Positions 5,991 through 38,902 are shown, counted from the first letter of the stretch. The stretch is DNA of 64,000 nt from Macrostomum lignano (GCA_002269645.1 NIVC01002153.1:135595-199594), one strand, 5' to 3'. The notes: generated by a model from the sequence alone, not told the origin. Numbers and translations are program-made.

Positions 5991-6590
5991 ATATCACACC
6001 TGAGAATATCACACCTGGGAATATCACACCTGAGAATATCACACCTGGGAATATCACGCCTGAGAATGTCACACCTAAGAATATCACACCTGAGAATATC
6101 ACACCTGAGAATATCTCTCCAAGAATATCACACCTGAGAATATCTCACCTGAGAATATCACACATGAGAGTATCACACCTGAGAATATCTCACCTGAGAA
6201 TATCACACCTGAGAATATCTCACCTGAGAATATCACACCTAAGAATATCACACCTGAGAATATCACACCTGAGAATATCTTACCTGAGAATATCACACCT
6301 GAGAATATCACACCTAAGAATATCACACCTGAGAATATCACACCTGAGAATATCACACCTGAGAATATTACACATGAGAGTATCACACCTGAGAATATCA
6401 CACCTGAGAATATTACACATGAGAATATCACACCTGAGAATATCACACCTGAGAATATCACACCTGAGAATATCTTACCTGAGAATATCACACCTGAGAA
6501 TATCACACCTGAGAATATCACACCTGAGAATATCACACCTGAGAATATCACACCTGAGAATATTACACATGAGAGTATCACACCTGAAAA
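5991..6590 (+). repeat. 15-bp minisatellite GAGAATATCACACCT
   Basis: Tandem repetition. Confidence 0.95.
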
Positions 6591-7052
6591 TTTACACACC
6601 AGATATTTTTACTTTTTGTGATAAAAAATATTTAACAAAACTGACGCTAGCGGTGCCGTCAGGTGTGAACTTGACTAAACAAACTGTTCAGTAACATAAT
6701 AAAAGTAACATAATTTGGTGAGGTTAATAAAATAAATTTTAGCGATAGCGAAACGCTACCACCCCAACCACAACAAGTTGGGCGCGGCCTGTCTGCTCAC
6801 TCACAGGTGCTAAAATCATTGCAATTATAAAGTAGAGCTATTTCAAACACGTTTTATTGATAATTAACTGGGCTAAATTGAGCCTAATTGCCTCGTGCAC
6901 TGAAAACCTGGCGCGGCTAATTGACGCCCCAGGAGGGCCCACCAAACTCCCCCACCCCATAAGCCCCACAAACTGCGACTTTTTCTGATTGGTCAATTAA
7001 TTAATTAATTATATAAAGTCTGACGCAATCGTGCACCTGTTTTGCAACAGCA

Positions 7053-16912: not shown

Positions 16913-19900
16913 TCACTCGCCGGACCCAGCGGCGGCATTGGCTGCAGCGGCCGCGGCAGACACGGCGGTGGCAGCGGCGGCGGCCCGGCGAGCCCAGTCG
17001 CCAGCTCCTGGCGGTGGCGGCCTGCTGCTGACATAGTCGGCATCCCGCTGCACAGTCATAGTCTGGTACTTCTCCCGCTGGGCAGGCGTGGCGATGCGTT
17101 GGAAATAGAAATCGTCAAGCAGCTGTTTGAGTTGTCGGGCCTCGCAGCTCTCCCAGGCCAGACTGCGGACCCGAACCTGCTTCCTGTCGTCGTCCTCATC
17201 CTCGGAGCTGACAAATTCGCGCTGCAGAAGCTCTTCGAGTTTGGCCGCCTCCTGAGTCTCCAAGGTGCGGGACAGGTAGCTGGCGGCTTTCTGGCGACGG
17301 CGGAGCTTCTGGTTTATCGGGGGTGAGTTGGGAGATGAGAGTGAACAGATACCTGTTGTATACTACTGACGCATGCGCTATTTAGTAATATAATATGGAA
17401 ATCATCCATCCTGTTTTCAATTGCGCCCACCCTATTTCTAATCTCACCATTCTGTTTTCAATCGCACCCACCCTATCTCTAATCTCACCCCTCATGTTTT
17501 AAATCTAACCCTCTTGTTTTAAATCCCACCCATCATATATCTAATCTAATCACCTAGCCTATTTCTAATCTCACCCATTCTGTTTTTAATCTCACCCAAC
17601 CTATTTCTAATCTCACCCACCATATCTCTAATCGCACCTAGCCTATTTCTAATCTCACACTCTTGTTTTAAATCTCACCCACTTTATCCGCAACCTCATC
17701 TACATAATCTCTAATCTCACCATCCTGTTTTTAATCTCATTCAACCTATTTCTAATCTCACTCACCATATCTCTAATCGCACCTAGCCTATTTCTAATCT
17801 CACCCACCCTATCCCTAATCTCACCTACCCTATCTCTAATCTCACCTACCCTATCTCTAATCTCACCATCCTATCTGTAGCAACACAAGCTACAAGAGTC
17901 AGCAGCAACACAAACCTTCATTCGCGAAGTGAACCGCCTAGCGCGCTCATTGCTGCCAATATCTTTCAGTCGGCGAAATATGTCTTTCATAGCGGCGAGA
18001 AAGGAGTCAGTAAGGCTCGCTTCTGCAACAAAAGGATAAAAATTAAGTATCTATTTTGTTAATTTAGCTACTAAAATAAGTTTAAAAGACGAATAAAAAG
18101 TCAAGCAACATCTCTCACCTCGTCCATCTCCATCGCAACAGCCCAGTCTGCCGATTGCGCGGCGAATAACTTTGCGAGTAATTTCCACATTCAAAGCGTG
18201 AGTGAATGGCAGATTCAGTTTGAACAGATGCGGCCCGGTTCCTTTTAGCTCTTTGTAGCACTCGCGTAGCAGAGCCTAAACATATTTTACAATGCAAAGA
18301 TAGGTAAAAACGGCCCTTTTAAGTACGCTCAAAACTTCAAAGTTCGAATCTACATGAGTTCGAATCTACATGAGTTCCAATCTATATGAGCTCGAATCTG
18401 CATGAGCTCGAATCTACATGAGCTCCAATCTGCATGAGCTCGAATCTACATGAGCTCCAATCTACATGAGTTTGAATCTATATGAGCTCGAATCTACATG
18501 AGTTCGAATCTACATGAGCTCGAATCTACATGAGCTCCAATCTACATGAGTTCGAATCTACATGAGCTCCAATCTACATGAGTTCGAATCTATATGAGTT
18601 CGAATCTACATGAGCTCGAATCTACATGAGCTCCAATCTACATGAGTTCGAATCTACATGAGCTCCAATCTACATGAGTTCGAATCTATATGAGTTCGAA
18701 TCTACATGAGTTCGAATCTATATGAGTTCGAATCTACATGAGTTCGAATCTACATGAGTTCGAATCTATATGAGTTCGAATCTACATGAGTTCGAATCTA
18801 CATGAGTTCGAATCTATATGAGTTCGAATCTACATGAGTTCGAATCTACATGAGTTCGAATCTATATGAGTTCGAATCTACATGAGCTCGAATCTTCATG
18901 AGTTCGAATCTACATGAGCTCCAATCTACATGAGTTCGAATCTACATGAGCTCCAATCTACATGAACCCGAATCTACATGAGCTCGAATCTTCATCAGCA
19001 TAAGACTTCACACGTTCGAAGCCTTATTTTGTCGAAAACGTCTTACCAGAATCACATACGCTAGCTTAAAAAACTTACAACACAAATGCTTTCAAGTTCA
19101 ACGCTTTAAGAAACATCGGGTCTTTCTTTATCAACTCACCCGAGACTCCGCCGGGTCCATCGGCAAGCCTGACTTGCCAGAACCGCCGCTTCCACTGCTG
19201 CCTCCGCCTCCACCGCCACCAGAAGCGACAACCTCCTCGCCAGCCACCGTCGGCATACTCAGAATCGAACCGAAGCATCTAACAGTCGAAGCACCGCTGC
19301 CCAGATCTTCTTCGCTGTCGTCGGCTGCTCCTGCCGCTGGCAATTCGCCGACAATGGCATCTCCGGCGTCAACAACATCAGAGGGAGGCGGAGGCTGTGA
19401 TGATGGAGACGACAGATCCAACTGACGCCGGGGCATGACAGTCAGCTGGATCTGACGCTGATGCTTCTTCTGACTGGTTGGTGGCTGCTGTTGCTGTTGA
19501 ATCTTGATCGGATGCTGGATATGCAGGAGCTCGTCAGCCGCCACTGCTAAGCAATTGTTAAGGCTCGAGTCTACGCCAACTGTGGATGAGTCATCTTCAA
19601 CGCTAAGCTGCTCGTCATCAAGATGCTGAGCATCGGTGCTGGGCCTCTGCTGTTGCTGCTGTCGATGAGGCCGCTTTCTACAGCGTCGTTTAGCAATGGG
19701 AATGATTGACGGCCGCGACTGAGGCGATGAGGCCACTGATGAGGCAGTAGCAGATTTGGTTGTAGCTGGCAGATTTGGAGACTGGCGCTGCTGATGAAGC
19801 TGATGAAGCTGAAGATGGTGAGATGGCAGCGGTACAGTGGAATCAGCACTGCTTGACGATGTTGTCGGAGCTGCAGCGGCTGCGGCAGCGGCGGCGGCTG

Positions 19901-20263: not shown

Positions 20264-20597
<334 letters not shown>

Positions 20598-21214
20598 TAG
20601 CTCCGAAAGCAAAAAACATAAAAAGCAACGAGTTTCTATTACGTGACGTCACACAAACAAAGTATGCATTGTTATTAATTGCTGGATTGCTGAAGCTGAC
20701 CAGCTGTGCTTCAAAAATACAACATGGCAAATGGTGACAGACATATGTAAACTGAAAGCAATAGAATTGAATTTCCTAGCAAATTATTGAAGTAATAAAC
20801 GCAATGCGATCACTGGTTGAAGCAGAGGATGATCAATAATAGTGGTGCAAATGAAGTTTTAAAAAAAGAATTCTTCAGTCATTAAATATGTATAGGAGCT
20901 GATGCAAGTTTCATTTTATTAAAAATATAGTTATAAAATAGAATGCTGAGTCAACTACAAGAGTGAAGTTATCAACAGATGGAATTATTGCCCATTGGTG
21001 ACCAATTGAAATACCTGTTGAGTAACCGCCTCACATGCAAGTATTCTTATTTAAAAAAAAACAAAAGTTAGTGACGATGATTGAATTAGCAGATGAATTA
21101 TTGAACAGATTGCCGATTTTGTTGTTGTTTAATTACTTATTGCAACTGCTGCAAACTGAAATAGAGCTTCGTTGACCAGTGACTTGGACAAACTATGGAA
21201 TAGGCGGGCATAGA

Positions 21215-22432
21215 CACAGTGAGACAGACAGACAAAGCAGACGGACACATATACAGACAACAGGCAGAACAAACCAAAGACACAACAGACAGACCTAACA
21301 GAAAGACAGACACAGGGACGGACACAAAAACAGACAAAGCAGACAGACACAGCAGACAGACAGACACAGGGACGGACACAAAAACAGACAAAGCAGACAG
21401 ACACAGCAGACAGACAGACAGCAGACAGACACAGCAGACAGACAAGCAGACAGACACAGCAGACAGACAAGCAGACAGACACAGCAGACAGACAAGGAGA
21501 CAGACACAGAGACAGACACGCAGACAGATACAGCAGACAGACACAGCAGACAGACGCAGCAGACAGACAAGCAGACACACAGCAGACAGACACAGCAGAC
21601 AGACACAGCAGACAGACAAGCAGACAGACAGCAGACAGACACACAGCAGACAGACACAGCAGACAGACAAGCAGACAGACAGACACAGGGACGGACACAA
21701 AAACAGACAAAGCAGACAGACACAGCAGACAGACAGACACAGACAGACACGCAGCAGACAGACACAGCAGACAGACAAGCAGACAGACAGCAGACAGACA
21801 CACAGCAGACAGACACAGCAGACAGATAAGCAGACAGACACAGCAGACAGACAAGCAGACAGACAAGGAGACAGACACAGCAGACAGACAAGCAGACAGA
21901 CACAGCAGACAGACAAGCAGACAGACAGCAGACAGACACACAGCAGACAGACACAGCAGACAGACAAGCAGACAGACACAGCAGACAGACAGCAGACAGA
22001 CACACAGCAGACAGACACAGCAGACAGACAAGCAGACAGACACAGCAGACAGACAAGCAGACAGACACAGCAGACAGACACAGCAGACAGACAAGGAGAC
22101 AGACAAGGAGACAGACAAGGAGACAGACACAGCAGACAGACAAGCAGACAGACAAGGAGACAGACACAGCAGACAGACAAGCAGACAGACAAGGAGACAG
22201 ACAAGGAGACAGACAAGGAGACAGACAAGGAGACAGACACAGCAGACAGACAAGGTGACAGACACAGCAGACAGACAAGGAGACAGACAATGAGACAGAC
22301 ACAGCAGACAGACAAGGAGACAGACACAGCAGACAGACAAGGAGACAGACACGCAGACAGATACAGCAGACAGACACAGCAGACAGACAAGCAGACAGAG
22401 AGACAGCAGACAGACACAGCTCAGACAGACAG
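21215..22432 (+). repeat. Degenerate GACA/GCAGACAGACACA-type simple repeat
   Basis: Direct; source of the CLSV-rich ORFs. Confidence 0.93.
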
Positions 22433-22470: not shown

Positions 22471-22800
22471 CTACATCCGCTTAGCCCAGCCGGGACATTC
22501 GCTAGGCGGAGGTCGGGAGCTGCGGCAGGCGGGGTCCCGCCTCAGCCGGGTCATCTCGCCGCGCTGTTTCTCGTCAGCTAGGTTGTCGTGGAACAGTTGG
22601 TCAAGCCGGTGTTTCATGTCGCGCAGTTCGTCAGACTCCCATGGGAGCTGTTTGACTCGCATCTCGCTGTCTAAATCGGCGCCGCACTCTTCATCTGAGG
22701 AGGTGAAGTCGCGGTTTAGTACAGATTCGTAGCGCTCTCGGGCGGCTGAGTCCAGAGTGGGCTTCAGGCTGTCGAAGGCTTTCTGGCGGCGGTTGAGCTT
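22471..22800 (-). CDS. Gene B constant terminal exon
   Basis: CAG acceptor, phase 0, homologous to gene A exon 4, stop TAG at 22471. Confidence 0.85.
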   Translation of the reverse strand, partial: KLNRRQKAFDSLKPTLDSAARERYESVLNRDFTSSDEECGADLDSEMRVKQLPWESDELRDMKHRLDQLFHDNLADEKQRGEMTRLRRDPACRSSRPPPSECPGWAKRM

Positions 22801-25800
22801 CTGCCAGGGTGTTGGGGCGTTGGGATGGGGATTGAGTCACGACAGACATGCATGAAGTGACCCTGAAGCTTATTAATCCTCATCCTGAAGTGACCCTGAA
22901 GTCTATTGCTCCTCATCCTGAAGTGACCCTGAAGCTTATTAATACTCACCCTGAAATGACCCTGAAGTCTATTGATACTCATCCTGAAGTGACCCTGAAG
23001 CTTATTAATACTCATCCTGAGGGGACCCTGAAGACTAATACTCATCCTGAGGGGACCCTGAAGACTAATACTCATCCTGAAATGACCCTGAAGTCTATTA
23101 ATACTCATCCTGAAGTGACCCTGAAGCTATATCTATTCTGAATTATCTTCTGCTTTTGATTCTTTTTTATAGGCAGTTAATTGAAATATCCTGCTTTTAA
23201 AAATTCCTGAACTAATGATAAACACTTGTGATAAGGAATTCCGAAGAAGTATTATAAAGAATACCTGCTTGCAATTGCTGTCTGCTTTTGTATATCAAAA
23301 CCTTAACTACAGAATTGTAACAACATAAGTGGAGACAAAAGACTGAAAGCAACTCAGAGATGGTAGACAGAAGACTGAAAGCAACTCAGAGATGGGAGAC
23401 AGAAGACTGAAAGCAACTCAGAGATGGTAGACAGAAGACTGAAAGCAACTCAGAGATGGTAGACAGAAGACTGAAAGCAACTCAGAGATGGGAGACAGAA
23501 GACTGAAAGCAACTCAGAGATGGGAGACAGAAGACTGAAAGCAACTCAGAGATGGGAGACAGAAAGAAGACTGAAAGCAACTCAGAGATGGGAGACAGAA
23601 AGAAGACTGAAAGCAACTCAGAGATGGTAGACAGAAGACTGAAAGCAACTCAGAGATGGGAGACAGAAGACTGAAAGCAACTCAGAGATGGGAGACAGAA
23701 AGAAGACTGAAAGCAACTCAGAGATGGGAGACAGAAAGAAGACTGAAAGCAACTCAGAGATGGGAGACAGAAGACTGAAAGCAACTCAGAGATGGGAGAC
23801 AGAAGACTGAAAGCAACTCAGAGATGGGAGACAAAAGACTGAAAGCAACTCAGAGATGGGAGACAGAAAGAAGACTGAAAGCAACTCAGAGATGGGAGAC
23901 AGAAAGAAGACTGAAAGCAACTCAGAGATGGTAGACAAAAGACTGAAAGCAACTCAGAGATGGGAGACAGAAGACTGAAAGCAACTCAGAGATGGGAGAC
24001 AGAAAGAAGACTGAAAGCAACTCAGAGATGGTAGACAAAAGACTGAAAGCAACTCAGAGATGGGAGACAAAAGACTGAAAGCAACTCAGAGATGGGAGAC
24101 AGAAAGAAGACTGAAAGCAACTCAGAGATGGTAGACAAAAGACTGAAAGCAACTCAGAGATGGGAGACAGAAGACTGAAAGCAACTCAGAGATTCTATTC
24201 TAACCTAAAACAGGAAATGTCAATAACTTATCCATATGGTTCAACAAAGACAAAAGCAGAAACACTTGATCTTAAATTCGAAATTCGAAATAATTAGACA
24301 ACATAATAAAAAACAGATGGTATGAGCCACATCCCAGTGGGAGTTTAGAAACACCATTTAGTCCAGTCAAGGTGTGAAGTCACACGTGACAAAGGCAATT
24401 AGCAAGACGTATAAATTGTGCAAATCGAGTCAACCCAACAGCAGGGGACAGAGGGGCGTATGGGGTACGTCGCAGTCACAAACACCTGGATGAAGGACGC
24501 TGGGAAACTGCCTCAATGGACCAAATCGCGAATTAAAAACTTCCCGGACTAAAGACTTCAACGCTTGACTGAAGTTAAATAAATTTTATAATCAAGCTAT
24601 CAGCTTGGCCTGTAAATGCTAAATAAGGTGGGTTATTAAGGGAGGCTCTCACAGCCATATAATCGTACCGGGTACTATATATTGTAGACATTTATATACA
24701 GCCTGAGATAGACACATGATACAGACTGAGACACAGGAATGACAGACTGAGACACAGGAATGACAGACTGAGACACATGAATAAGAGAATGAGACCCATG
24801 AATAAGAGACTGAGACACATGAATGACAGACTGAGACACAGGAATGACAGACTGAGACACATGAATGACAGACTGAGACACATGATAGAGACTGACACAC
24901 AGGGATGACAGACTGAGGCACATGATAGAGACTGAGACACATGAATGACAGACTGAGACACATGATAGAGACTGAGACATATGAATGACAGACTGAGACA
25001 CAGGAATGACAGACTGAGACACAGGAATGACAGACTGAGACACATGAATGACAGACTGAGACACAGTAATGACAGACTGAGACACAGGAATGACAGACTG
25101 AGACACAGGAATGACAGACTGAGACACATGAATAAGAGAATGAGACACATGAATGACAGACTGAGACACAGGAATGACAGACTGAGACACAGTAATGACA
25201 GACTGAGACACAGGAATGACAGACTGAGACACAGTAATGACAGACTGAGACACAGGAATGACAGACTGAGACACATGAATGAGAGAATGAGACACAGTAA
25301 TGACAGACTGAGACACAGGAATGACAGACTGAGACACATGAATGACAGACTGAGACACATGAATGAGAGAATGAGATACATGAATGACAGACTGAGACAC
25401 ATGAATGAGAGAATGAGACACAGGAATGACAGACTGAGACACATGATAGAGACTGAGACACATGAATGACAGACTGAGACACAGGAATGACAGACTGAGA
25501 CACAGTAATGACAGACTGAGACACATGAATGAGAGAATGAGACACAGTAATGACAGACTGAGACACAGGAATGACAGACTGAGACACAGTAATGACAGAC
25601 TGAGACACAGGAATGACAGACTGAGACACAGTAATGACAGACTGAGACACATGAATGACAGACTGAGACACATGAATAAGAGAATGAGACCCATGAATAA
25701 GAGACTGAGACACATGAATGACAGACTGAGACACAGGAATGACAGACTGAGACACATGAATGACAGACTGAGACACATGATAGAGACTGACACACAGGGA

Positions 25801-28800
25801 TGACAGACTGAGACACAGGAATGACAGACTGAGACACAGTAATGACAGACTGAGACACAGTAATGACAGACTGAGACACAGGAATGACAGACTGAGACAC
25901 AGGAATGACAGACTGAGACACATGAATGACAGACTGAGACACATGAATGAGAGAATGAGATACATGAATGACAGACTGAGACACATGAATGACAGACTGA
26001 GACACATGATAGAGACTGAGACACATGAATGACAGACTGAGACACAGGAATGACAGACTGAGACACAGTAATGACAGACTGAGACACATGAATGAGAGAA
26101 TGAGACACAGTAATGACAGACTGAGACACAGGAATGACAGACTGAGACACAGTAATGACAGACTGAGACACAGGAATGACAGACTGAGACACAGTAATGA
26201 CAGACTGAGACACAGGAATGACAGACTGAGACACATGAATGAGAGAATGAGACACAGTAATGACAGACTGAGACACAGGAATGACAGACTGAGACACATG
26301 AATGACAGACTGAGACACATGAATGAGAGAATGAGATACATGAATGACAGACTGAGACACATGAATGACAGACTGAGACACATGAATGAGAGAATGAGAC
26401 ACAGGAATGACAGACTGAGACACATGAATGACAGACTGAGACACATGAATGAGAGAATGAGATACATGAATGACAGACTGAGACACATGAATGAGAGAAT
26501 GAGATACATGAATGACAGACTGAGACACATGAATGAGAGAATGAGACACAGGAATGACAGACTGAGACACATGAATGACAGACTGAGACACATGAATGAG
26601 AGAATGAGACACAGGAATGACAGACTGAGACACAGGAATGACAGACTGAGACACAGGAATGACAGACTGAGACACATGATAGAGACTGAGACACAGGAAT
26701 GACAGACTGAGACACATGAATGACAGACTGAGACACATGAATGAGAGAATGAGATACATGAATGACAGACTGAGACACATGAATGAGAGAATGAGATACA
26801 TGAATGACAGACTGAGACACATGAATGAGAGAATGAGATACATGAATGACAGACTGAGACACAGGAATGACAGACTGAGACACAGGAATGACAGACTGAG
26901 ACACATGAATGACAGACTGAGACACATGAATGACAGACTGAGACACATGAATGAGAGAATGAGATACATGAATGACAGACTGAGACACATGAATGAGAGA
27001 ATGAGATACATGAATGACAGACTGAGACACAGGAATGACAGACTGAGACACAGGAATGACAGACTGAGACACAGGAATGACAGACTGAGACACAGGAATG
27101 ACAGACTGAGACACATGATAGAGACTGAGACACAGGAATGACAGACTGAGACACATGATAGAGACTGAGACACAGGAATGCCAGACTGAGACACATGATA
27201 GAGACTGAGACACATGAATTGCAGACTGAGACACATGAATGACAGACTGAGACACATGAATTGCAGACTGAGACACAGGAATGACAGACTGAGACACATG
27301 AATGACAGACTGAGACACATGATAGAGACTGAGACACAGGAATGACAGACTGAGACACATGATAGAGACTGAGACACAGGAATGCCAGACTGAGACACAT
27401 GATAGAGACTGAGACACATGAATGGCAGACTGAGACACATGAATTATAGAATGATTACAAAAAATTATAAAACCTAAGTATGGGATTAAGAATAATATAT
27501 AGGTCAGTGAAAGTTAAGTAGGTCAAAGAAAAGCTGCGTAGGACAAAATGTGACAAATTTTCTAGATTCGCTCTGGCTGGTTACAAATTCTAAGACGATG
27601 ACAAGCTGTCAGTAAGCCAGTCAAGCATATGATATAAGCTCAGTAATTAGCCCTCAATAGGGTAATCTGATTATTAATTTTCTAAGATGAAACTCAGGAG
27701 AAAGTAGTTTTTTGAATATTGACGAGTCGCGAGACTTCATGACATTTCACTCTCCTTAAGCCTATTTAGTTTCTAGCCAACTTACCACCTAGAGCTAGCT
27801 TGAGAAAATTTCCATAACCAAGGCCTAACACCACTACACACCCTGGGGGTCCTTAGCCATAGGGCAATGGTGTGGCTAATTCTGGCTCGCGAAAACCCTT
27901 GGGTCCTTTAAAACTTCACAAAGGCGTGTTTGTGTCTCTTTCTCTACCTACTTCTCTTTATCTTACTCTCTTCTCTTCCCTCTTGTCTCCTCTCTCCTCT
28001 CAACTCTTCTGTCTTATCTCGTCTCTTATGTCCTTATCTCTCCTCTCTTATCTCCTCTCTTATCTCTCCTCTCTTATCTCCTCTCTTATCTCTCCTCTCT
28101 TATCCCTCCTCTCTTATCTCCTCTCTTATCTCTCCTCTCTTATCTCCTCTCTTATCTCTCCTCTCTTATCTCCTCTCTTATCTCTCCTCTCTTATCTCCT
28201 CTCTTATCTCTCCTCTCTTATCTCCTCTCTTATCTCTCCTCTCTTATCTCCTCTCTTATCTCTCCTCTCTTATCCCTCCTCTCTTATCTCCTCTCTTATC
28301 TCCTCTCTTATCTCTCCTCTCTTATCTCCTCTCTTATCTCTCCTCTCTTATCTCCTCTCTTATCTCTCCTCTCTTATCTCCTCTCTTATCTCTCCTCTCT
28401 TATCTCCTCTCTTATCTCTCCTCTCTTATCTCCTCTCTTATCTCTCCTCTCTTATCTCCTCTCTTATCTCTCCTCTCTTATCTCTCCTCTCTTATCTCTC
28501 CTTCCCCTCTTATACTCGTATCTCCTCTCCCCTCTTATCTCTCCTCTCCGATCTATCTCTCCTCTCCCCGATCTTATCTCTCATCTCCTTTTCTCCCTTT
28601 GCAGCTCTTTTACCCTTTCCTCTCTAATATCCAATCGCCCTTTTTATCTCTTATCTCCTCTCACCTCTTATCTCTCTCCTATTCTCCCTTCGCAGCTTTC
28701 CTTTACACTTTCCCCTCTATTATCCTCTCTCATCTCCCCTTTCCCTCTTATACTCGTATCTCCTCTCCCCTCTTATCTCTCCCCTCCAATCTATTTCTCT

Positions 28801-31800
28801 TATCCCCTCTTAACTCTTATCTTTTCTAATTACTTTTCTCCTTTCCTCCTTTTTCTCCTTTTTCTCCTTTTCCTTTTCTCCTTTTTCTCCTCTCCTTCTA
28901 CTGCAGCTTCTATGGACAGAATTGAAAACAATGGTCTGGCACCCTGCGGGGGACTGTCGCTTGAAAACAAAGACCTTAATAGAATGCACGAATTGCGTAA
29001 TATAGCTCGAAAGAGAAAGTGGTCAGTCAACGTGCACATATTGCCTAGGGGGAGGGGAGACTTAGCAAGGATAAGGAGACTTAGTTGGGACTTTACTATT
29101 ATTGATACTGCGCAGTATCCAGTAGCCTTAGCCAGAGAATGAAGGTGCAAATGATGCCTAACCAAATCATATGCCCATTCGTATAATATTAAACCATTTT
29201 TACCCGCAGGCCAACTGTGCGAAATAGAAAAAGTGCTAAATAAAAACAACACCTTCTAACTATGAGCAATGGCATTGAATCCAGTAACCCGTAAACTTTA
29301 TATGCGTTTGTGAAATGAAAAGGTGAATAATACTGAGTTGATTATTGCGGGTAGAGAGGTGTGCTAGCAGAATCTTTCCCTGCTCTGATTTATAAATTTC
29401 TGACAATTTTAGATGTAACTGAGATGACGGAAAAAAGAAGAAAAGAAAATGGATAATGATGGAGACTTGGAGAAAGAGAAATGTTGGAGAAATATTGGGA
29501 GAAAAATAGGATGGCGAAAAGGAGAAAAATAAAATGGAGACTGAGAGTATAAGAGGATGGAGATGGGGAGAAAAATTGGATGAAGACTAGAAGACGGAGA
29601 CTGGGAGACTGAGAATGGAGACTGGGAGACTGAGGATGGAGACTGGGAGACTGAGGATGGAGACTGGGAGACTGAGGATGGAGACTGGGAGACTGAGGAT
29701 GGAGACTGGGAGAAAGAGGATGGAGACTGGGAGACTGAGGATGGAGACTGGGAGACTGAGGATGGAGACTGGGAGACTGAGGATGGAGACTGGGAGAAAG
29801 AGGATGGAGACTGGGAGACTGAGGTTGGAGACTGGGAGACTGAGGATGGAGACTGGGAGAAAGAGGATGGAGACTGGGAGAAAGAGGATGGAGACTTGGA
29901 GAAAAAGAGGATGGAGACTGGGAGACTGAGGATGGAGACTGGGAGAAAGAGGATGGAGACTGGGAGAAAGAGGATGGAGACTGGGAGACTGAGAATGGAG
30001 ACTGGGATAAAGAGGATGGAGACTGGGAGACTGAGGATGGAGACTGGGAGAAAGAGGATGGAGACTTGGAGAAAGAGGATGGAGACTGGGAGAAAGAGGA
30101 TGGAGACTGGGAGACTGAGGATGGAGACTGGGAGACTGAGGATGGAGACTGGGAGAAAGAGGATGGAGACTGGGAGAAAGAGGATGGAGACCGGGAGAAA
30201 GAGGATGGAGACTGGGAGACTGAGGATGGAGACTGGGAGAAAGAGGATGGAGACTGGGAGAAAGAGGATGGAGACTGGGAGACTGAGGATGGAGACTGGG
30301 AGAAAGAGGATGGAGACTTGGAGAAAAAGAGGATGGAGACTGGGAGACTGAGGATGGAGACTGGGAGAAAGAGGATGGAGACTGGGAGAAAAAGAGGATG
30401 GAGACTGGGAGACTGAGGATGGAGACTGGGAGAAAGAGGATGGAGACTGGGAGACTGAGAATGGAGACTGGGAGAAAGAGGATGGAGACTGGGAGAAAGA
30501 GGATGGAGACTGGGAGAAAGAGGATGGAGACTGGGAGAAAGAGGATGGAGACCGGGAGAAAGAGGATGGAGACCGAGAGAAAGAGGATGGAGACTGGGAG
30601 ACTGAGGATGGAGACTGGGAGAAAGAGGATGGAGACTTGGAGAAAGAGGATGGAGACTGGGAGAATGAAAGGATGAAGACTGGGAGACTGAGGATGGAGA
30701 CTGGGAGAATGAAAGGATGAAGACTGGGAGACTGAGGATGGAGACTGGGAGACTGAGGATGGAGACTGGGAGAAAGAGGATGGAGACTGGGAGACTGAGG
30801 ATGGAGACTGGGAGAAAGAGGATGGAGACCGGGAGAAAGAGGATGGAGACTGGGAGAAAGAGGATGGAGACCGGGAGAAAGAGGATGGAGACTGGGAGAA
30901 AGAGGATGGAGACTGGGAGAAAAAGAGGATGGAGACTGGGAGACTGAAGATGGAGACTGGGAGAAAGAGGATGGAGACTGGGAGAATGAGAGGATGAAGA
31001 CTGGGAGACTGAGGATGGAGACTGGGAGAAAAAGAGGATGGAGACTGGGAGACTGAGGATGGAGACTGGGAGAAAGAGGATGGAGACTGGGAGAATGAGA
31101 GGATGGAGACTGGGAGAAAGAGGATGGAGACTTGGAGAATGAGAGGATGGAGACTGGGAGAAAGAGGATGGAGACTGGGAGAAAGAGGATGGAGACCGGG
31201 AGAAAGAGGATGGAGACTGGGAGAAAGAGGATGGAGACTGGGAGAAAGAGGATGGAGACCGGGAGAAAGAGGATGGAGACTGGGAGAAAGAGGATGGAGA
31301 CTGGGAGAAAGAGGATGGAGACCGGGAGAAAGAGGATGGAGACTGGGAGAAAGAGGATGGAGACTGGGAGAATGAGAGGATGGAGACTGGGAGAAAGAGG
31401 ATGGAGACTGGGAGAAAGAGGATGGAGACTGGGAGAAAGAGGATGGAGACTGGGAGAAAGAGGATGGAGACTGGGAGAAAGAGGATGGAGACCGGGAGAA
31501 AGAGGATGGAGACTGGGAGAAAGAGGATGGAGACTGGGAGAAAGAGGATGGAGACTGGGAGAAAGAGGATGGAGACTGGGAGAAAGAGGATGGAGACTGG
31601 GAGAAAGAGGATGGAGACCGGGAGAAAGAGGATGGAGACTGGGAGAATGAGAGGATGGAGACTGGGAGAAAGAGGATGGAGACTGGGAGAAAGAGGATGG
31701 AGACCGGGAGAAAGAGGATGGAGACTGGGAGAAAAAGGATGGAGACTGGGAGAAAGAGGATGGAGACTGGGAGAAAGAGGATGGAGACCGGGAGAAAGAG

Positions 31801-34800
31801 GATGGAGACTGGGAGAATGAGAGGATGGAGACTGGGAGAAAGAGGATGGAGACTGGGAGAAAGAGGATGGAGACCGGGAGAAAGAGGATGGAGACTGGGA
31901 GAAAAAGGATGGAGACTGGGAGAAAGAGGATGGAGACCGGGAGAAAGAGGATGGAGACCGGTAGAAAGAGGATGGAGACTGGGAGAAGCAGAGGGAGAAG
32001 ACTTGAAAAAGCAAGAAAATAAATACTGGAAAAGGAGGAAGACTGGGAGTCTGGTAGCCGCGAATAAAGAAGAATTGGGATATTGTAGAAATAGAGAAAG
32101 ATAGAGTAGGCACAGAGACAGATGGAGCAGAAAGAGGGATACATACAGTAGACAGAGTGGTAGATGTAGTAGGCAGAGAGATAGATTGAGTAGACAGAGG
32201 GATAGATGGAGTAGAAAGAGAGATATATTAAGTAGACAAAGAGATAGATGGAGTAGTCGGAGAAATAGATAGAATAGACAAAAGCACAGCACAAGGCAGG
32301 ACACACAAAAAACTGACACTATTTCAATATGATTTAATAATCAAACACTGAAGTACAAAACATTAGTTAGAAGATAAAAAATTCTTCAACATTTTCTTCA
32401 ACAAAGCTGAATACCATTTCAGAATATCACCGTGACATTGGTTTCCCCAATTGTGACTCCGTGCGAGGGGTCCACCAGACCCCATCCCAGCCAATAGGAA
32501 TCCAGCTAGGGGGCAATCTGTATACCGCACCCCTCCCAGCCAATAGGAATCCAGCTAGGAGCAATCTGTATACCGGACCCATCCCAGCCAATGACAGCCA
32601 GACTGTAAACTTTATATAATCGAGACAACTTTTTCCATCTCAGTCGATCAATCAATCAGCAGTAGAAGCAGTTCTACTAGAAGATCGAGGAAGCCAGCTA
32701 TACGGAGGTAAGTCTTACTTCTATCTTAAGACTATTATGGCGCTTTCTAGTCCAACGTGTCTCATTATTAGTGCCCGTTGTACTAAAGAGTGGTCCATAA
32801 CAAAGCTTATTAATCGACTGCTTTATTTTATTATTTTCATTACATATAAATAAGGCGCTTTATTAGAACTGCTTCAACTTTCTTTACATTGTACACGCAC
32901 TGATTTTATTAGGTGTGTACAAGGTAAGAGTTGGAATAGTCGCCTTGATTCGACGTTTTCAAGATTCTGAATAATCAGTATTAGTGATACAGTCAGTTTG
33001 GCTAACCATGGTTGCACAAACAAGAGATTTTAAAGCTTGGTGTACATGGGAAGCCTACTGTCTGGTCACTATGAGCAGCACAGTAAATCCTAATCCCTAT
33101 ACTAAGCGGACAATACTATCGCAGGGTCCTTCTCTGAGTACACGTGAAGGCAAAAGTCATGTGTACAGAGTAAGCGCCCTACGTTATTATCCGTTAAGCA
33201 CCTAGTAACCCCTCATCAAAGGCTGGATTAACATTGTGGCGCTTTATAGTCCAACGTGTCAGCTATCAGTGACCGTTTGACTACGAAGCGGTCACAATAT
33301 CATTCCTTAATCGACTGGATCAGCTTGTAATTATTGCAATAGAAATTATAACTCTGTGGCGCTTTATAGTCCAACGTGTCTGCTATATGATAAGTGACCG
33401 TTGTACTACAGAGTGGTCACAGAGTGGTTTCTAAACCAACTGCCCTACCCACCCAAGTTTAAATATGAGCCAAATATGGCGCTTTATAGTCCAACGTGTC
33501 TGCTATATGATAAAAGTGACCGTTGTACTATAGAGTGGGCTATATTGCCGGCTTGTTGATCAGCGATACTGGACCTTAACCCTTATTCATTATATTCAGT
33601 ACATTGCGCATCATCCATACCGCTTAACATCCAAACTGCTACATCATCTATACCAGTCATTATTTATGATCTATATCATCATCATCAATACCAGCAATCA
33701 TTTATACCAGTTATATACCAGTACTGCTAGTCATCATCCATACTGGTCATCATCCATACTGGTCATTATCCATACTGGTCATTATCCAAAGTACTGCTAG
33801 TCATCATCCATACTGCTCATCATCTATACTGCTCATTATCCAAAGTACTGCTAGTCATCATCCATACTGCTCATTATCCTAAGTACTGCTAGTCATCATC
33901 CATACTGGTCATCATCCATACTGCTCATTATCCAAAGTACTGCTAGTCATCATCCATACTGCTCATTATCCTAAGTACTGCTAGTCATCATCTATACTGC
34001 TCATCATCCATACTGCTCATTATCCTAAGTACTGCTAGTCATCATCCATACTGCTCATTATCCTAAGTACTGCTAGTCATCATCCATACTGGTCATCATC
34101 CATACTGCTCATTATCCAAAGTACTGCTAGTCATCATCCATACTGCTCATTATCCTAAGTACTGCTAGTCATCATCTATACTGCTCATCATCCATACTGC
34201 TCATTATCCTAAGTACTGCTAGTCATCATCTATACTGCTCATTATCCATACTGCTCATTATCCTAAGTACTGCTAGTCATTATCCATACTGCTCAGTATC
34301 CAAAGTACTGCTAGTCATCATCCATATTGCTCATTATCTTAAGAACTGCTAGTCATCCATACTGCTCATCATCCATACTGTTCATCATCCATACTGCTCA
34401 TTATCCTAAGTACTGCTAGTCATTATCCATACTGCTCAGTATCCAAAGTACTGCTAGTCATCATCCATATTGCTCATTATCCATACTGCTCATTATCTTA
34501 AGAACTGCTAGTCATCATCCATACTGCTCATTATCCATACTGCTCATTATCCTAAGTACTGCTAGTCATTATCCATACTGCTAGTCATCATCTATAATCA
34601 TACTGCTCATTATTTATACTGCTTAGATCCAACATAAGCCTCAGACTATCCAAAATTTACCGTAATCCTACTAATGATTTGCGAAGTAAAACGAACAGTC
34701 TCGCGTTGTTTGTGCGAAAATTTCAAATTCATCGAATAATATCGACGAAAATAATCGTGACACCGCTCTAGAAAACGTCAACAAAGTACGTTAACTTCTA

Positions 34801-37800
34801 ATGAAAGTAGTAAAAAAGCGTTAAAAATAACAAGGGAGGTTGCACGGGCTCAGATGCTTACAACAAGGGTGTGCCTAGCGCTGGCTATGTAGCTATTTAA
34901 GGTGGTCACTCGCTCCTCTTCTAAGAATTTCCTTCGCATGTTTTTGTACACAACAGTGCGCAAATAGAAATTGTTAGCTTCTGTAAGTGAAATTGAGATT
35001 TTCATGACTGTTTATTATAAATAATAGTATAAAACCACAGGGTCTCTCATTGACATAGATACACATTTTCTAGAAATTATTATGTACACATGCGACATTA
35101 TGGACTGCCATAACTATCATATGGATGGAAGTCTATGTTCCTACCACTGATACTAAACTACGAGTAACTAGATAAGACACCCAGGCATCGTAGTGATTTA
35201 GTAAAACAGCTTTCTACTTTCAGTAGCAAATAAGAATACATAAGCTATTTTATAAAAATAAAGGCAGCTGAAGTGACTTTGACAAGTTTGCAGCTTGCTA
35301 ATTGGATCAGCAATAATGTACTTTGGCCAGTCCACTTGAAATGTACATAGCAGCTGTAGGCTGGAATTCCGATAATAAAAATTAGGGCGGGGCGGGGTGG
35401 TAGTGGAAAGGCGCGGTTGGAGGGTAAGGGCAAATAAATGATGGCCTTTTAAAATTCATAAAAATGCGTCTAAGCTACTACTACTACTGAACTGAAAGTA
35501 GCTTACAAGCAAATCAGCCCATTTGTATTCTAGTTATTCTAGTATCTGTGGTTTCTACTGAGAGAGGGGCATCTTTCTTTGTGCGGATGTCTATGGTCGA
35601 ATTTTCAACTTGTCTATGGGCAAGAATGTCTGTCTATGTCATAGAACTTAGAGAATTGAAATAGGGAACAGCAGTCTATGGTCTAAAGCCAAAGCTATCT
35701 AACAAGCAGCATTATTTCATCTCACACTGAAAGTGGCCACGCGTGTATTCAATAACGAATGTAGCTTCCGTTCTCTGGCCAAAGCTGAATGAGATTGTTT
35801 CAATGATTTGAAGAAATTGTACTGAAAATATCGCTTAGATGAGTCTGTAATGTGTCAATTTTTCGTAACGTAATAAATAGCTATTTAATTTACAATTTAC
35901 TAGGAGTCAAAACGTTTCTTAGAAAACTTAGAATTAAGGCCTGAATAGAACACTGCAGGTTTTTTTTTACTTTTTTCGGATATTTTTTCGACACTACTTA
36001 TAGTAAAATGTTATAGCAAACTCCCATTCCCAAGAAAACTTTAAAAAGTGTAATTAGCAGTAAATTAAGAGTTGACTTGCGTACTGAATAAGTGTTGATA
36101 AGTTTATTGGATTTCAATCGATTAGCTTCCAACGAATAGGACTTCCTTAGCGTGTCTCTATAGTAAGTGCCGGTGTACTTTTGAATGGCGACTGTAAGCA
36201 AAAGTGCATAACAATGTATAAATATTTTGTTAAAGTACTTTAGGCGCCCACGATTATTAAAATACTGAAGAGGATGCTGCAGGTCTAAATAAATCCCTTA
36301 GATTAATCTCAACTCCCCATTGATAATAAAAGATAAAATTTTTAATTACAAATATTTTCTGCATATTTGAGCTGAGATTTTTGTTTAACTGCGTTGTACG
36401 AAATTTGCACTTCAAATTGTGATCAAAGTGATAGCGCATGTACTTCAGTGCCGGCTCTAAAAAGGTATATAAATTAAAAAAAATTGCACACTGTCTAATG
36501 ATCAAATGATTGAAATTTCTTGAACAAAGACTGTTGCAGAGATTAGTAATATTGAATGAATTTAATTACAAAAATTTGATGCATTTTCAAATCCCTATAG
36601 TAGACAGTCAGGTATTTGAAACCAGCTTCTAAAATAAAAATAAATTTTCATAAATCTATTTCATATCCTAGTGAACTGTGTAGTTATTATTCAATCAAAT
36701 TACAGTCTGCTCAAGGACGGAGCGTGGTGCTTTCATGAACGATTTCTACAAACAGCAACTTATACTTACCAACGACTGTCTCAGCTGCCTCATCACCGAG
36801 GCCCCAGCATCAATAGTCTTCTGCCGATATTTCAAATAAGTACTGTAGTAGTTTCTCAAATATTTCGATGCTAAGTCTATAAAGCATTGTTTTCATTATG
36901 TTAGAATCAATTATCTTAGAACACAGCTCAACACAACAGCTCAATTGCCAAAGATTTTAGCAGCAACAAGTAGAAACAATGATTAACTTACAAAAACAGA
37001 GTAGAATCGGTTTTTAGCCCTGCTTCGATTGTAATCCGATTTTAAGAAACCGTAATACCAACTATTCAGGTATTTGATACCTAGGCCTGATCGATTATTA
37101 ATAGACTGTGTACATTATATAAGAATAAGGATTTTTTAAAAAATGGGAAAAGCCATTTCAGGGCCAAATATTCTCTAGTTTATTGACCACAAGCAAGAAT
37201 TTCTCAAGTATTACGCTTGTAAAGTTTAATTAGTTAATTAATGCATAGTTGCGACAATAACGTGAGCAATTTTGACCATTCAATCCTGGTCATGTTTAAC
37301 AGTCCCAGCACAAACACTACACTATATAGTCTGAAACAAATAAAAAACTTTCTAACTTTCCCAAACTCTGTCTCAATGAGAGAGCCCTGCAACGTCCTTT
37401 CACAATTGAGGCGCAAAAACTTTAAATAATAATAATCGGAATTTTATGTTAAATATGCTACTGGTTTGCTTCATAAGTAGAATTAAACGAATATTGCAAC
37501 AATATTTAAAAAGGAGCAGAACTTACTGGTCCAAGCGGCAATGTTAGTGGGCTTGTAGCTGGTGATTTGCAAAGCTTTGTCAATTACTTTCTTGGCGGCC
37601 TCCATGTTAACGGGGGCGGAGTAGGGCAGGGAGAAGTCGAATACGTTTGAACCGGTTTCGTCTTTGAGCTGGCGGTAGGCTTTACGGAGTATGCCCTGGG
37701 ATTAGTAGGATATTGGAATGGTAGGATTGTTTGATTTTTAGATGCTTATTATGCTTTTGGACGAATACGAACGTACTTTACATCGAGGTGTGAAAGTTAC

Positions 37801-38902
37801 AAAGTGTGACAGGCCCATAGCAACCGAGGATCTGTGAGTGTGACAGGTCCATAGCAACCGAGGATCTGTGAGTGTGACAGGCCCATAGCAACCGAAGATG
37901 GGTGTGACAGGCCCATAGCAACCGAGGATCTGTGAGTGTGATAGGCCCATAGCAACCGAGGATCTGTGAGTGTGACAGGCCCATAGCAACCGAGGATCTG
38001 TGAGTGTGACAGGCTCATAGCAACCGAGGATCTGTGAGTGTGACAGACCCATAGCAACCGAGGATCTGTGAGTGTGACAGACCCATAGCAACCGAGGATC
38101 TGTGAGTGTGACAGACCCATAGCAACCGAGGATCTGTGAGTGTGACAGACCCATAGCAACGGAGGATCTGTGAGTGTGACAGGCCCATAGCAACGGAGGA
38201 TCTGTGAGTGTGACAGGCCCATAGCAACGGAGGATCTGTGAGTGTGACAGGCCCATAGCAACCGAGGATCTGTGAGTGTGACAGGCCCATAGCAACCGCC
38301 AGATAGCCCCCTACCTTCCACTCAGCGGACAGTTCGCCAGTATCGCTAAGGTCTCCACCGCTAGTTCTGGCAATCTTTGCCGGGCTACCAGCCGACGCAC
38401 CGAAGGCGGCGCCGCTGCCGCCCGGAGCGCCGACAATGTCAAAACTGCCGAACATGCTGCCGCTAGCGTCGTCGTCCAGAATCTGACAATCGTCATCAGA
38501 GTTGTACTCTCGTTTTAATGAGCCAGCCGACATAAAGTCGGCGACAGCGCCGCTGCTTGACGGCTGCTGCTGCATCTTCATAGCCGAGTTGCCGATTTGC
38601 GATCCAGATGATCCAATATTCGCCGTCGGCGGAGGCGGAGGCGGCGGACATCTGGCGTGAGCATCGGCCGTGTCGGCAATCCTGACAAATTGCGGTTCCA
38701 TAGCTTCGACTAGATGAGAATTCAATTGGGTGACGATTTTGAAAGCGACCATCAGATCTCTAGCAGCCATGCTGTCAATCAGCATAGTGGCATTAGTGAT
38801 GGTGCACTCGAACAGTGTCAAAGGCGAGAATGCGCCTCCGCCGCCGGCGCCACCGCCGGCACCCATCTGCTGCGGGGTCATCATAGCAATGCTGGCCGCC
38901 AT
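22471..38902 (-). CDS. Gene B: C14orf93-like paralog with a mutually exclusive exon-3 cassette (~397 aa per isoform with a 107-nt exon 3)
   Basis: Exon 1 38902-38315 (PLTLFECT domain), exon 2 37695-37527 (GILRKAYRQLK..VFDFSLPYSAPVN, ends phase 1), alternative exon 3s at 34661-37086 (phase 1 to 0), terminal exon 22800-22471 (KLNRRQKAF..FTSSDEE..VKQLPWESDEL..RLD..SSRPPP). Same intron positions as gene A. The link to the terminal exon across about 12 kb is inferred. Confidence 0.75.
22850..23125 (+). repeat. ~33-bp minisatellite TCATCCTGAAGTGACCCTGAAGCTTATTAATAC
   Basis: Tandem repetition. Confidence 0.9.
23330..24192 (+). repeat. 32/36-bp minisatellite AGACAGAAGACTGAAAGCAACTCAGAGATGGG
   Basis: Tandem repetition. 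Confidence 0.95.
24705..27442 (+). repeat. 21-bp minisatellite ATGAATGACAGACTGAGACAC with variants
   Basis: 2.7-kb tandem array; source of the 900-aa spurious ORFs. Confidence 0.97.
27990..28810 (+). repeat. CT-rich simple repeat (TCCTCTCTTATCTC-type)
   Basis: Direct. Confidence 0.93.
29595..31985 (+). repeat. 21-bp minisatellite GAGGATGGAGACTGGGAGAAA with variants
   Basis: 2.4-kb tandem array. Confidence 0.97.
32481..32645 (+). promoter_or_regulatory. Pol II promoter: three ~48-bp repeats each with CCAAT, plus TATA and Inr
   Basis: CCAAT at 32491, 32540 and 32588; TATATAA at 32613; TCAGTC initiator at 32640-32645, with the A 29 nt after the TATA start. Confidence 0.8.
32738..32798 (+). 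ncRNA. pre-miRNA-like hairpin, family 1 copy a (5p UGGCGCUUUCUAGUCCAACGUG)
   Basis: 5p arm pairs with CCGTTGTACTAAAGAGTGGTCCA; lower stem TTATGG/CCATAA; CGAC at 32815. Confidence 0.7.
32852..32946 (+). ncRNA. pre-miRNA-like hairpin, family 2 copy a
   Basis: TTGTACACGC/GTGTGTACAA core stem extended by CAAC/GTTG and AAGGCG/CGCCTT; CGAC at 32951. Confidence 0.6.
33035..33107 (+). ncRNA. Possible additional hairpin
   Basis: GCTTGGTGTA/TATACTAAGC and TACTGT/ACAGTA stems with a large internal loop; no clear CNNC. Confidence 0.35.
33123..33180 (+). ncRNA. pre-miRNA-like hairpin, family 2 copy b
   Basis: GTACACGTGA/TCATGTGTAC, CTCT/AGAG and AGGGT/GCCCT stems; 3p arm ATGTGTACAGAGTAAG resembles GTGTGTACAAGGTAAG of the 32852 hairpin. 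Confidence 0.55.
33237..33296 (+). ncRNA. pre-miRNA-like hairpin, family 1 copy b (5p UGGCGCUUUAUAGUCCAACGUG)
   Basis: Full-arm pairing; lower stem ATTG/CAAT; CGAC at 33312. Confidence 0.72.
33357..33421 (+). ncRNA. pre-miRNA-like hairpin, family 1 copy c
   Basis: Identical 5p arm; lower stem ACTCTGT/ACAGAGT; CAAC at 33437. Confidence 0.72.
33477..33543 (+). ncRNA. pre-miRNA-like hairpin, family 1 copy d
   Basis: Identical 5p arm; lower stem AATAT/ATATT and AGCC/GGCT; CAGC at 33561. Confidence 0.72.
33715..34620 (+). repeat. Composite minisatellite (AGTACTGCTAGTCATCATCCATACTGCTCATTATCCTA modules)
   Basis: Tandem modules with variable order. Confidence 0.92.
34661..34767 (-). CDS. Gene B alternative exon 3i (107 nt): KRCHDYFRRYYSMNLKFSHKQRETVRFTSQIISRIT
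   Basis: TTTTCTAG| ... |GTAAAT, phase 1 to 0, open; Y6, Y10-Y11, L15-K16 pattern. Confidence 0.8.
34862..34980 (-). CDS. Gene B alternative exon 3h (119 nt): KANNFYLRTVVYKNMRRKFLEEERVTTLNSYIASARHTLV
   Basis: CACTTACAG| ... |GTAAGC, phase 1 to 0, open; Y6, M15-R16, F19. Confidence 0.75.
35240..35334 (-). CDS. Gene B possible alternative exon 3g (95 nt): MDWPKYIIADPISKLQTCQSHFSCLYFYKIAY
   Basis: AAG| ... |GTATTC, phase 1 to 0, K5-Y6 and L15 kept; weak acceptor and divergent middle. Confidence 0.35.
35726..35844 (-). CDS. Gene B alternative exon 3f (119 nt): NSSKRYFQYNFFKSLKQSHSALARERKLHSLLNTRVATFS
   Basis: CATTACAG| ... |GTGAGA, phase 1 to 0; aligns without gaps to exon 3e (S.S..A...K...L.NT). 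An alternative donor at 104 nt is possible. Confidence 0.75.
36085..36191 (-). CDS. Gene B alternative exon 3e (107 nt): IAIQKYTGTYYRDTLRKSYSLEANRLKSNKLINTYS
   Basis: GCTTACAG| ... |GTACGC, phase 1 to 0, open. Confidence 0.78.
36350..36456 (-). CDS. Gene B alternative exon 3d (107 nt): KPALKYMRYHFDHNLKCKFRTTQLNKNLSSNMQKIF
   Basis: CCTTTTTAG| ... |GTAATT, phase 1 to 0, open. Confidence 0.75.
36570..36628 (-). CDS. Gene B alternative exon 3c (59 nt, short): KAGFKYLTVYYRDLKMHQIF
   Basis: TTATTTTAG| ... |GTAATT, phase 1 to 0; K5-Y6-L7, YY, LK. Confidence 0.6.
36770..36876 (-). CDS. Gene B alternative exon 3b (107 nt): NLASKYLRNYYSTYLKYRQKTIDAGASVMRQLRQSL
   Basis: CTTTATAG| ... |GTAAGT, phase 1 to 0, open. 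Confidence 0.8.
36992..37086 (-). CDS. Gene B alternative exon 3a (95 nt): SLGIKYLNSWYYGFLKSDYNRSRAKNRFYSVF
   Basis: GATCAG| ... |GTAAGT, phase 1 to 0, open. Confidence 0.75.
37527..37695 (-). CDS. Gene B constant exon 2
   Basis: CCCAG| ... A|GTAAGT, 169 nt, homologous to gene A exon 2. Confidence 0.85.
37800..38297 (+). repeat. 34-bp minisatellite GTGTGACAGGCCCATAGCAACCGAGGATCTGTGA (gene B intron 1)
   Basis: Tandem repetition. Confidence 0.95.
38315..38902 (-). CDS. Gene B exon 1 (PLTLFECT domain plus low-complexity linker)
   Basis: ATG at 38902; donor AAG|GTAGGG, phase 0. Confidence 0.85.

Follow-up and report, generated by a model that had tools for sequence, protein, structure and literature searches.

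A putative cluster of eight mutually exclusive exons encoding variants of a single helix in a gene of the flatworm Macrostomum lignano

The stretch of DNA examined for the current report is 64,000 nucleotides long and comes from the free-living flatworm Macrostomum lignano (GCA_002269645.1 NIVC01002153.1:135595-199594); we refer to the whole of it as the window and count positions from its first letter. On its minus strand it carries a gene that we call gene B (locus BOX15_Mlig030636), whose closest protein relatives are all from Macrostomum lignano. Between the second exon and the terminal coding exon of this gene lie eight short homologous exons, all within 2.4 kb, which, judging from their sequences, quite probably constitute a cluster of tandemly duplicated mutually exclusive exons (MXEs) set between two constitutive exons. 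The parts of the gene are listed below in the order of transcription; L001 (Mlig012439) and L009 (NIVC01001001.1, 3001-18278) are duplicate copies with which the window was compared, and P numbers denote proteins and protein models.

38315..38902, minus strand: gene B exon 1, with the ATG at 38902, ending in phase 0 at a GTAGGG donor and matching the N terminus of P0023 exactly
37527..37695, minus strand: gene B exon 2, constitutive, 169 nt, ending in phase 1 (…NIAAWT + A)
36992..37086, minus strand: alt1, 95 nt, SLGIKYLNSWYYGFLKSDYNRSRAKNRFYSVF; the same peptide in L001 and L009
36770..36876, minus strand: alt2, 107 nt, NLASKYLRNYYSTYLKYRQKTIDAGASVMRQLRQSL
36570..36628, minus strand: alt3, 59 nt in the window
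36350..36456, minus strand: alt4, 107 nt, KPALKYMRYHFDHNLKCKFRTTQLNKNLSSNMQKIF; one K->R change in L009
36085..36191, minus strand: alt5, 107 nt, in the NCBI models P0001 and P0023
35726..35844, minus strand: alt6, 119 nt, NSSKRYFQYNFFKSLKQSHSALARERKLHSLLNTRVATFS
35240..35334, minus strand: weak ninth candidate (rejected), 95 nt, with intron-like evolution and broken in L009
34862..34980, minus strand: alt8, 119 nt, in the UniProt models P0002, P0024 and P0020
34661..34767, minus strand: alt9, 107 nt, KRCHDYFRRYYSMNLKFSHKQRETVRFTSQIISRIT; the array exon closest to exon 3 of the paralog gene A
22801..34660, minus strand: intron from alt9 to the terminal exon, 11.86 kb, mostly minisatellite arrays
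22471..22800, minus strand: gene B terminal coding exon, starting in phase 0 (KLNRRQKAF…), with the stop codon at 22471-22473

All nine segments between exon 2 and the long intron are bounded by AG and GT, open in phase 1 and 3n+2 nt long (95, 107, 59, 107, 107, 119, 95, 119 and 107 nt, in order). The eight that we retain as array exons run from phase 1 to phase 0, measure 59-119 nt (four of them 107 nt), carry the donors gtaag, gtaat, gtgag or gtacg of ordinary U2-type GT-AG sites, and have in common the in-register motif K-Y-[LFM]..[YW][YF]...L-[KR], anchored at the acceptor. The original prediction, which had been made from the sequence of the window, had picked out these eight as clear exons on the same grounds, and their boundaries, lengths and open phase were confirmed. 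In both duplicate loci alt3 is 92 nt long, and the form found in the window is derived from it by a 33-nt in-frame deletion.

As a background for this family of exons we took all 3,546 open, AG..GT-bounded segments of 56-125 nt and 3n+2 length on both strands of the window, and scored them with a leave-one-out position-specific scoring matrix (PSSM) anchored at the acceptor. Without exception, the eight exons scored above every unrelated candidate (0 of the ~3,540 unrelated segments reached any of them), and the only six equally high scorers proved to be the same array exons read with an internal GT. A search of the rest of the intron with a hidden Markov model (HMM) of the exons, as suggested in the original prediction, was extended in all six frames and with the PSSM to the entire window, the 11.86-kb intron 34660-22801 included, and yielded no further exon of the family.

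The weak ninth exon of the original prediction (35334-35240) did not survive these comparisons. Its score lies at background level (343 of the 3,546 candidates score equal or higher), its four changes relative to L001 are all non-synonymous, and the L009 copy is interrupted by an in-frame stop, carries an indel and lacks a donor. These findings rule it out as an array exon, and what remains is a decaying pseudo-exon.

The arithmetic of the reading frame separates single from joint use of the array exons. Each of the nine coding sequences composed of exon 2, one candidate and the terminal exon is open up to the stop at 22471, and inclusion of a single array exon preserves the frame into the terminal exon. 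Double inclusion places a stop in the second of the two exons in 28/28 pairs, 41-104 nt before the last junction, and skipping of the whole array shifts the frame so that translation would stop 107 nt inside the terminal exon. The proposal that only one exon can be used per productive mRNA is therefore upheld, and the reading frame is the only filter shown against joint inclusion. We envisage that the pre-mRNA would be spliced to carry one array exon at a time, that the output would be eight proteins of 381-401 amino acids differing only in residues about 252-287, and that jointly included exons would be filtered out by their frame incompatibility, through a presumed nonsense-mediated decay or through truncation. 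For one of the eight, the link from exon 2 through the array to the terminal exon has RNA support: the isoform bearing alt5, the sole array exon used in the RNA-seq-based NCBI models of gene B (P0001 and P0023), is exactly NCBI PAA60433/PAA73638 (BOX15_Mlig030636g1/g2, P0023), and the NCBI gene models derive from a genome-guided StringTie + TACO RNA-seq assembly, run with --isoform-frac 0.75 (PMC5730564). Over the 3.2 kb of the array region that was aligned, the window agrees at 100% of positions with NIVC01002153.1 of assembly Mlig_3_7.

Comparison of the window with its duplicate copies provides an indication of how natural selection has acted on the array. Relative to L001, the eight exons differ at 4/820 nt, all of the mismatches being synonymous and the peptides identical, whereas the introns show 106-108 mismatches in ~1,900 nt (~5.6%) plus 197 gap columns (Fisher p=1.3e-12). 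Relative to L009 the corresponding counts are 7/820 for the exons versus 111/1,931 for the introns (Fisher p=9e-11), and the only amino-acid changes in the array exons are K->R and N->S. The splice sites, length class and frame of all eight exons are retained in the window, L001 and L009, and in the comparison with L001 the conservation is limited to the exon intervals, intron divergence returning within a few bases. By these measures all eight exons are under purifying selection and intact in three gene copies. The array exons even exceed the constitutive exons of gene B in conservation (4/761 versus 24/1,087 mismatches relative to L001, p=0.003), which implies a constraint on synonymous sites, possibly one that stems from splicing signals or RNA structure. 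Conservation of alternative exons beyond that of constitutive ones is typical of regulated alternative exons.

The array is not confined to gene B. A PSSM trained on the exons of the window only located arrays in the equivalent intron of three paralogous genes, with seven exons in L002 (the gene of P0003), at least three in L003 (P0005) and three in L007 (P0004), all of them AG/GT bounded and of 3n+2 length; about five array exons of 77 nt are present in L004 (P0008), a paralog that is more remote. The paralogs that carry this exon family are only 32-50% identical. Two complete public proteins come from L007, P0004 and P0030, and each combines a different single exon (6554-6672 and 8396-8502) with the same terminal exon, which is the pattern expected of mutual exclusion, and P0001, P0023, P0003, P0004 and P0030 are all complete proteins in which exon 2, one alternative exon and the terminal exon are joined. 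The best exon-to-exon matches run across loci (L2_6/L3_2, L2_7/L7_3, L2_2/L7_2), and part of the array must therefore be older than the gene duplications. A homolog from a starfish (P0063, L010) has one exon for the variable segment and a terminal exon that also begins with a similar sequence, KLQRRQ; from this single exon at the same intron positions we infer that the positions are old and the array a lineage-specific expansion. The neighbouring gene A likewise has no array but a single homologous exon:

17916..18022, minus strand: gene A exon 3, 107 nt, in P0040 (BOX15_Mlig011566g1)

The size of this exon (18022-17916), which is present in P0040, is that of the four 107-nt exons of gene B, as had been predicted.

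Several observations weigh against the interpretation of the array as an MXE cluster, and they are considered here together with the alternatives to which they lend themselves. The seven other full-length isoforms of gene B have no exact match in a collection of 15 billion proteins (the full isoform built with the weak ninth exon is likewise without a record there), and neither a transcript nor a protein model was found for alt1-4, alt6 and alt9 in the collections searched. The predicted path from 37527 through each alternative exon to 22800 is thus on record for alt5, by way of the RNA-seq-based P0023, and for none of the other seven. It might be argued from this that alt5 alone is functional and that its seven companions are recent silent duplicates, never productively spliced, particularly as the ninth candidate is indeed such a decaying pseudo-exon and a complete public protein is known for the alt5 isoform only. 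We consider this very improbable, since the seven exons have no amino-acid change relative to L001 and only the K->R and N->S changes relative to L009, against a divergence of ~5.6% and many indels in the introns that flank them; since splice sites, length class and frame have been kept in three copies, with even the 33-nt indel of alt3 in frame; and since the paralogs retain arrays with orthologous subtypes, L007 among them with its two isoforms using different exons. The presence of one recorded isoform per locus is plausibly explained by the isoform-frac filter of 0.75 that TACO applied to minor isoforms.

A second group of observations concerns transcripts that appear to end within the array. 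Exon alt8 occurs in the UniProt models P0002, P0024 and P0020 with read-through into the intron, and P0002 and P0024 finish with 'VSI*' after alt8 and are not joined to the terminal exon; two RNA-seq-based models of paralogs, P0005 and P0025, likewise stop shortly past an array exon. Among the public models of gene B, the complete ones contain alt5 and alt8 is seen in read-through models only; part of the output of the array may therefore be truncated or unproductive. Taken further, and in conjunction with the 11.9 kb of minisatellites that lie downstream of the array, these models might mean that the array exons serve mainly as alternative last coding exons, through read-through and polyadenylation as in lola, in proteins without the conserved C-terminal domain. 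That explanation strikes us as unlikely, because every exon retains a consensus GT donor and a 3n+2 length in all copies, features that a role as terminal exon would not select, and because P0001, P0023, P0003, P0004 and P0030 are complete through the terminal exon. The read-through models may instead represent unspliced precursors, which account for ~7% of the assembled M. lignano transcripts (PMC5730564).

The relationships between the duplicate copies are themselves a source of doubt. A further copy, L008, does not differ from the window. In L009, two kinds of segment alternate: exon 1 to alt1 and the terminal exon match the window exactly, but the central part of the array is ~6% diverged from it and has large indels. 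Such a mosaic points to conversion or recombination among the copies, or else to a chimeric assembly; gene conversion among the copies could therefore occur and locally inflate the apparent conservation. The Mlig_3_7 assembly also contains 180 Mb of redundant blocks that are at least 95% identical (PMC5730564). Of all the alternatives, however, a non-coding cause for the conservation, whether gene conversion, assembly redundancy or regulatory or antisense elements, seems to us the most remote. Introns adjoining the array exons are diverged despite the mosaic; the conservation relative to L001 is confined to the exons, where all changes are synonymous, and gives way to divergence only a few bases into the introns; exons of this family, with the phase and splice sites unchanged, are found in paralogs so distant (32-50% identity) that neither conversion nor redundancy can act on them; and no Rfam family matches the window.

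Two tests speak less clearly for the cluster than those described above. When a generic HMM was applied, leave-one-out, to stop-to-stop fragments, its signal was weak and the exons were not separated from the background; we treat the acceptor-anchored PSSM as the decisive test because a generic HMM has little power on peptides of 20-40 residues. Nor did an active mechanism of exclusivity emerge from the analysis. Steric hindrance and U2/U12 incompatibility, which are among the listed mechanisms of mutual exclusion (PMC5740500), both appear unlikely, the former because the introns that separate the array exons are 94-745 nt long and the latter because every donor has the appearance of a normal U2-type GT site. 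The complementarity between docking and selector elements that the original prediction proposed to look for in the introns did not rise above shuffled controls: with RNAduplex, candidate docking regions compared with the inter-array introns gave |z|<2 in 22/23 comparisons, the one exception being the first intron against the pre-terminal region (z=-3.2), no 12-mer paired with more array introns than in shuffled controls, and no shared intronic k-mers were found among the array introns, all in tests of low power that were done without a cross-species footprint. With these points taken into account, we hold that the array is real, unannotated and quite probably a cluster of mutually exclusive exons, and that a function of its products as DNA-binding regulators is speculation.

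Insights into what the array might diversify can be drawn from models of the encoded proteins. AlphaFold2 (AF2) models of P0001 and the paralog P0004 have predicted local distance difference test (pLDDT) values >90 over the C-terminal domain and locate the variable exon within one helix that is 56-60 residues long (H248-303 in P0001, H241-300 in P0004), so that the exon would encode most of a single long alpha-helix. Each of the variants has a net positive charge (+4 to +7) and many aromatic residues. The conserved aromatic N-terminal part of the segment (K-Y-L..YY...L-K), which corresponds to 'K.YF.SLKD' of distant homologs, is likely to anchor the helix to the conserved core, and the C-terminal part, which is basic (net +4 to +7) and varies between exons, is likely to determine the specificity for a partner. 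Profile searches detected 528 relatives, among them uncharacterised starfish, hemichordate and bivalve proteins, and at the position of the variable exon the distant homologs have a conserved 'A.K.YF.SLKD..RR' segment.

The original prediction had called the gene C14orf93-like, and this description holds in the sense of remote homology only. Pfam searches found neither PF15394 nor any other relevant domain in the isoform (E<=1), in 8 M. lignano members of the family (E<=10) or in 36 distant homologs (E<=0.01). One of the relatives, P0171, is a genuine member of PF15394 (DUF4616), with 47.2 bits against a cut-off of 27 over model positions 270-479 of 524; it matches the profile of the distant homologs with E=7e-17 and, by hhalign, that of the M. 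lignano proteins with 92.8% probability and E=4e-7 over 177 collinear columns that span the variable exon. The domain thus appears to be a remote relative of the C-terminal half of DUF4616/C14orf93. The collinear region comprises exon 2, the helix and the C-terminal part of the protein, and it exhibits the pattern …N..V…W…YF.S…KL.RRQ…SS[DE]EE…VR.L.WES…LD…S.RPPP…W in common with C14orf93/RTFC/4931414P19Rik. The M. lignano proteins and the 36 distant homologs differ from C14orf93 in falling under the Pfam thresholds, and their N-terminal domain is different.

The further suggestion of a nucleic-acid-binding helix found no backing in these searches. Foldseek comparison of the confident AF2 model with the PDB produced no fold match (best E=1.8), comparison of the family profile with the PDB sequences returned low-complexity noise only, and no Pfam domain pointed in this direction; the basic charge of the helix is only suggestive of nucleic-acid binding. 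The idea that the locus makes nuclear regulators of differing DNA specificity is similarly unsupported. What has been published on the vertebrate gene leads elsewhere: the mouse C14orf93 homolog is reported to be a secreted chemoattractant (PMC10163356), and C14orf93/RTFC has been linked to thyroid differentiation (PMC5322522).

The sequence-level features by which MXEs are recognised in genome-wide catalogues (PMC3923563, PMC5740500) can all be traced in the array. The exons are neighbours between the same flanking exons, which are joined in P0023; they have similar lengths, the same phase and conserved splice sites, in L001 and L009 as well as in the window; they are homologous in sequence according to the acceptor-anchored PSSM, if only weakly so by the generic HMM; and no two of them can be joined productively, the frame being shifted in 28/28 pairs. 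The closest resemblance is to the frame-shifting MXE clusters, or nonsense-mediated decay class, catalogued for Drosophila as well as human (Kassiopeia, PMC3923563; Hatje et al. 2017, PMC5740500), in which tandem homologous exons of the same phase encode the same secondary-structure element, as in gene B, and joint inclusion leads to a premature stop. Human MXE clusters consist mostly of pairs, but 71 clusters of 3-10 exons are on record (PMC5740500), and an array of this kind is therefore already known. What distinguishes the array of gene B is its occurrence in a free-living flatworm and in an uncharacterised protein family, and its recurrence in paralogs; the catalogued clusters, for their part, require validation by splice junctions, whereas that of gene B is known mostly from its sequence.

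The likeness to Dscam1 that had been proposed stands as far as the tandem mutually exclusive signature is concerned. As in exons 4, 6 and 9 of Dscam1, large tandem arrays of homologous exons would contribute one exon to each mRNA and swap a module in a constant scaffold, and in gene B the diversity is multiplied by the paralogs. Dscam1 has 12/48/33 variants as compared with the eight of gene B and swaps half an Ig domain rather than a helix in an intracellular-looking DUF4616-related domain, and its docking/selector signature was not found in the gene B array within the tests run. The parallel drawn with lola and mod(mdg4) is mistaken with regard to mechanism. These genes resemble gene B in combining a common N-terminal part with one of many variable modules, but they use alternative 3'-terminal exons, partly trans-spliced, that have their own stop and poly(A) and encode zinc fingers or FLYWCH domains, whereas the exons of gene B are internal, lack a stop, have GT donors and are joined in frame to a common C-terminal exon. 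The closest flatworm-related example that our literature search found is the mutually exclusive exon pair of helminth coq-2 (PMC7434440), which is a pair in an enzyme that is conserved and whose biochemical switch is known, as opposed to an array of eight in a lineage-expanded family. The claim that no such system has been described for C14orf93-like proteins is in agreement with our literature search, which found no paper describing the gene B array, MXE clusters in Macrostomum or exon arrays in C14orf93/DUF4616 genes, and no mention of the gene identifiers.

Multi-exon mutually exclusive clusters are uncommon and best known from arthropods. The existence of an eight-exon cluster, recurring across paralogs, in a flatworm model that can be made transgenic would offer a tractable case for the study of how exon arrays originate and keep their phase. 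It would also mean that an annotation of M. lignano with one isoform per locus misses up to eight proteins per gene, and the models mark one helix as the likely specificity-determining element of the C14orf93/DUF4616-related domain, which might serve as an entry point to this domain. One may speculate, at rather long odds, that the whole family is a combinatorial system, in which at least five paralogs, often in tandem and with 3-8 helix exons each, determine partner specificity by a logic like that of Dscam or the protocadherins but inside the cells of a regenerating flatworm, in which the helix variant would differ from cell to cell, under regulation or by chance, and in which the constraint on synonymous sites reflects a still undiscovered code for exon selection; the last two suppositions are entertained jointly with the first and at the same long odds.

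The window is rich in repeats, and ~8 kb of the gene B intron at 22801-34660 is minisatellite; the equivalent intron in the paralog L002 measures about 1-2 kb only. The arrays in the 11.86-kb intron of gene B are the following.

24710-27444: 21-nt units x131
29589-31987: 21-nt units x113
33718-34582, 27961-28596, 23331-24193 and 22853-23128: further minisatellite arrays

The long open reading frames (ORFs) in this intron are due to the minisatellites, several frames of which are open. A 34-nt x14.7 tandem repeat in intron 1 of gene B (37803-38298), 95% matching and open in all three minus-strand frames, likewise makes the ORF of exon 1 run artificially past the true donor at 38315. The space between genes A and B is filled with long microsatellites of the (TCTG)n and (AGAC)n type (20264-20598 and 21222-22432), which give rise to long but spurious ORFs in all frames.

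Members of the family tend to be found as head-to-tail pairs. Gene A (P0040, 16913-20165) lies downstream of gene B (22471-38902), P0031 downstream of P0004 in L007, and P0028 upstream of P0008 in L004; the tandem arrangement of family members was examined at L002 as well. A contig of 4,884 nt (L006, ENA ERZ25070786 ctg69267l) contains a homolog of the terminal exon (P0022) and, 2 kb off, a homolog of exon 2 from another member, and the family, again in tandem, is therefore present in at least one other sampled organism. Three ab initio UniProt models of paralogs, P0006, P0026 and P0021, string several array exons together or fuse neighbouring genes; they go by misleading names inherited from the segments that were fused (Exo70, ULP protease, Ras-GEF, BEN) and look like annotation errors.

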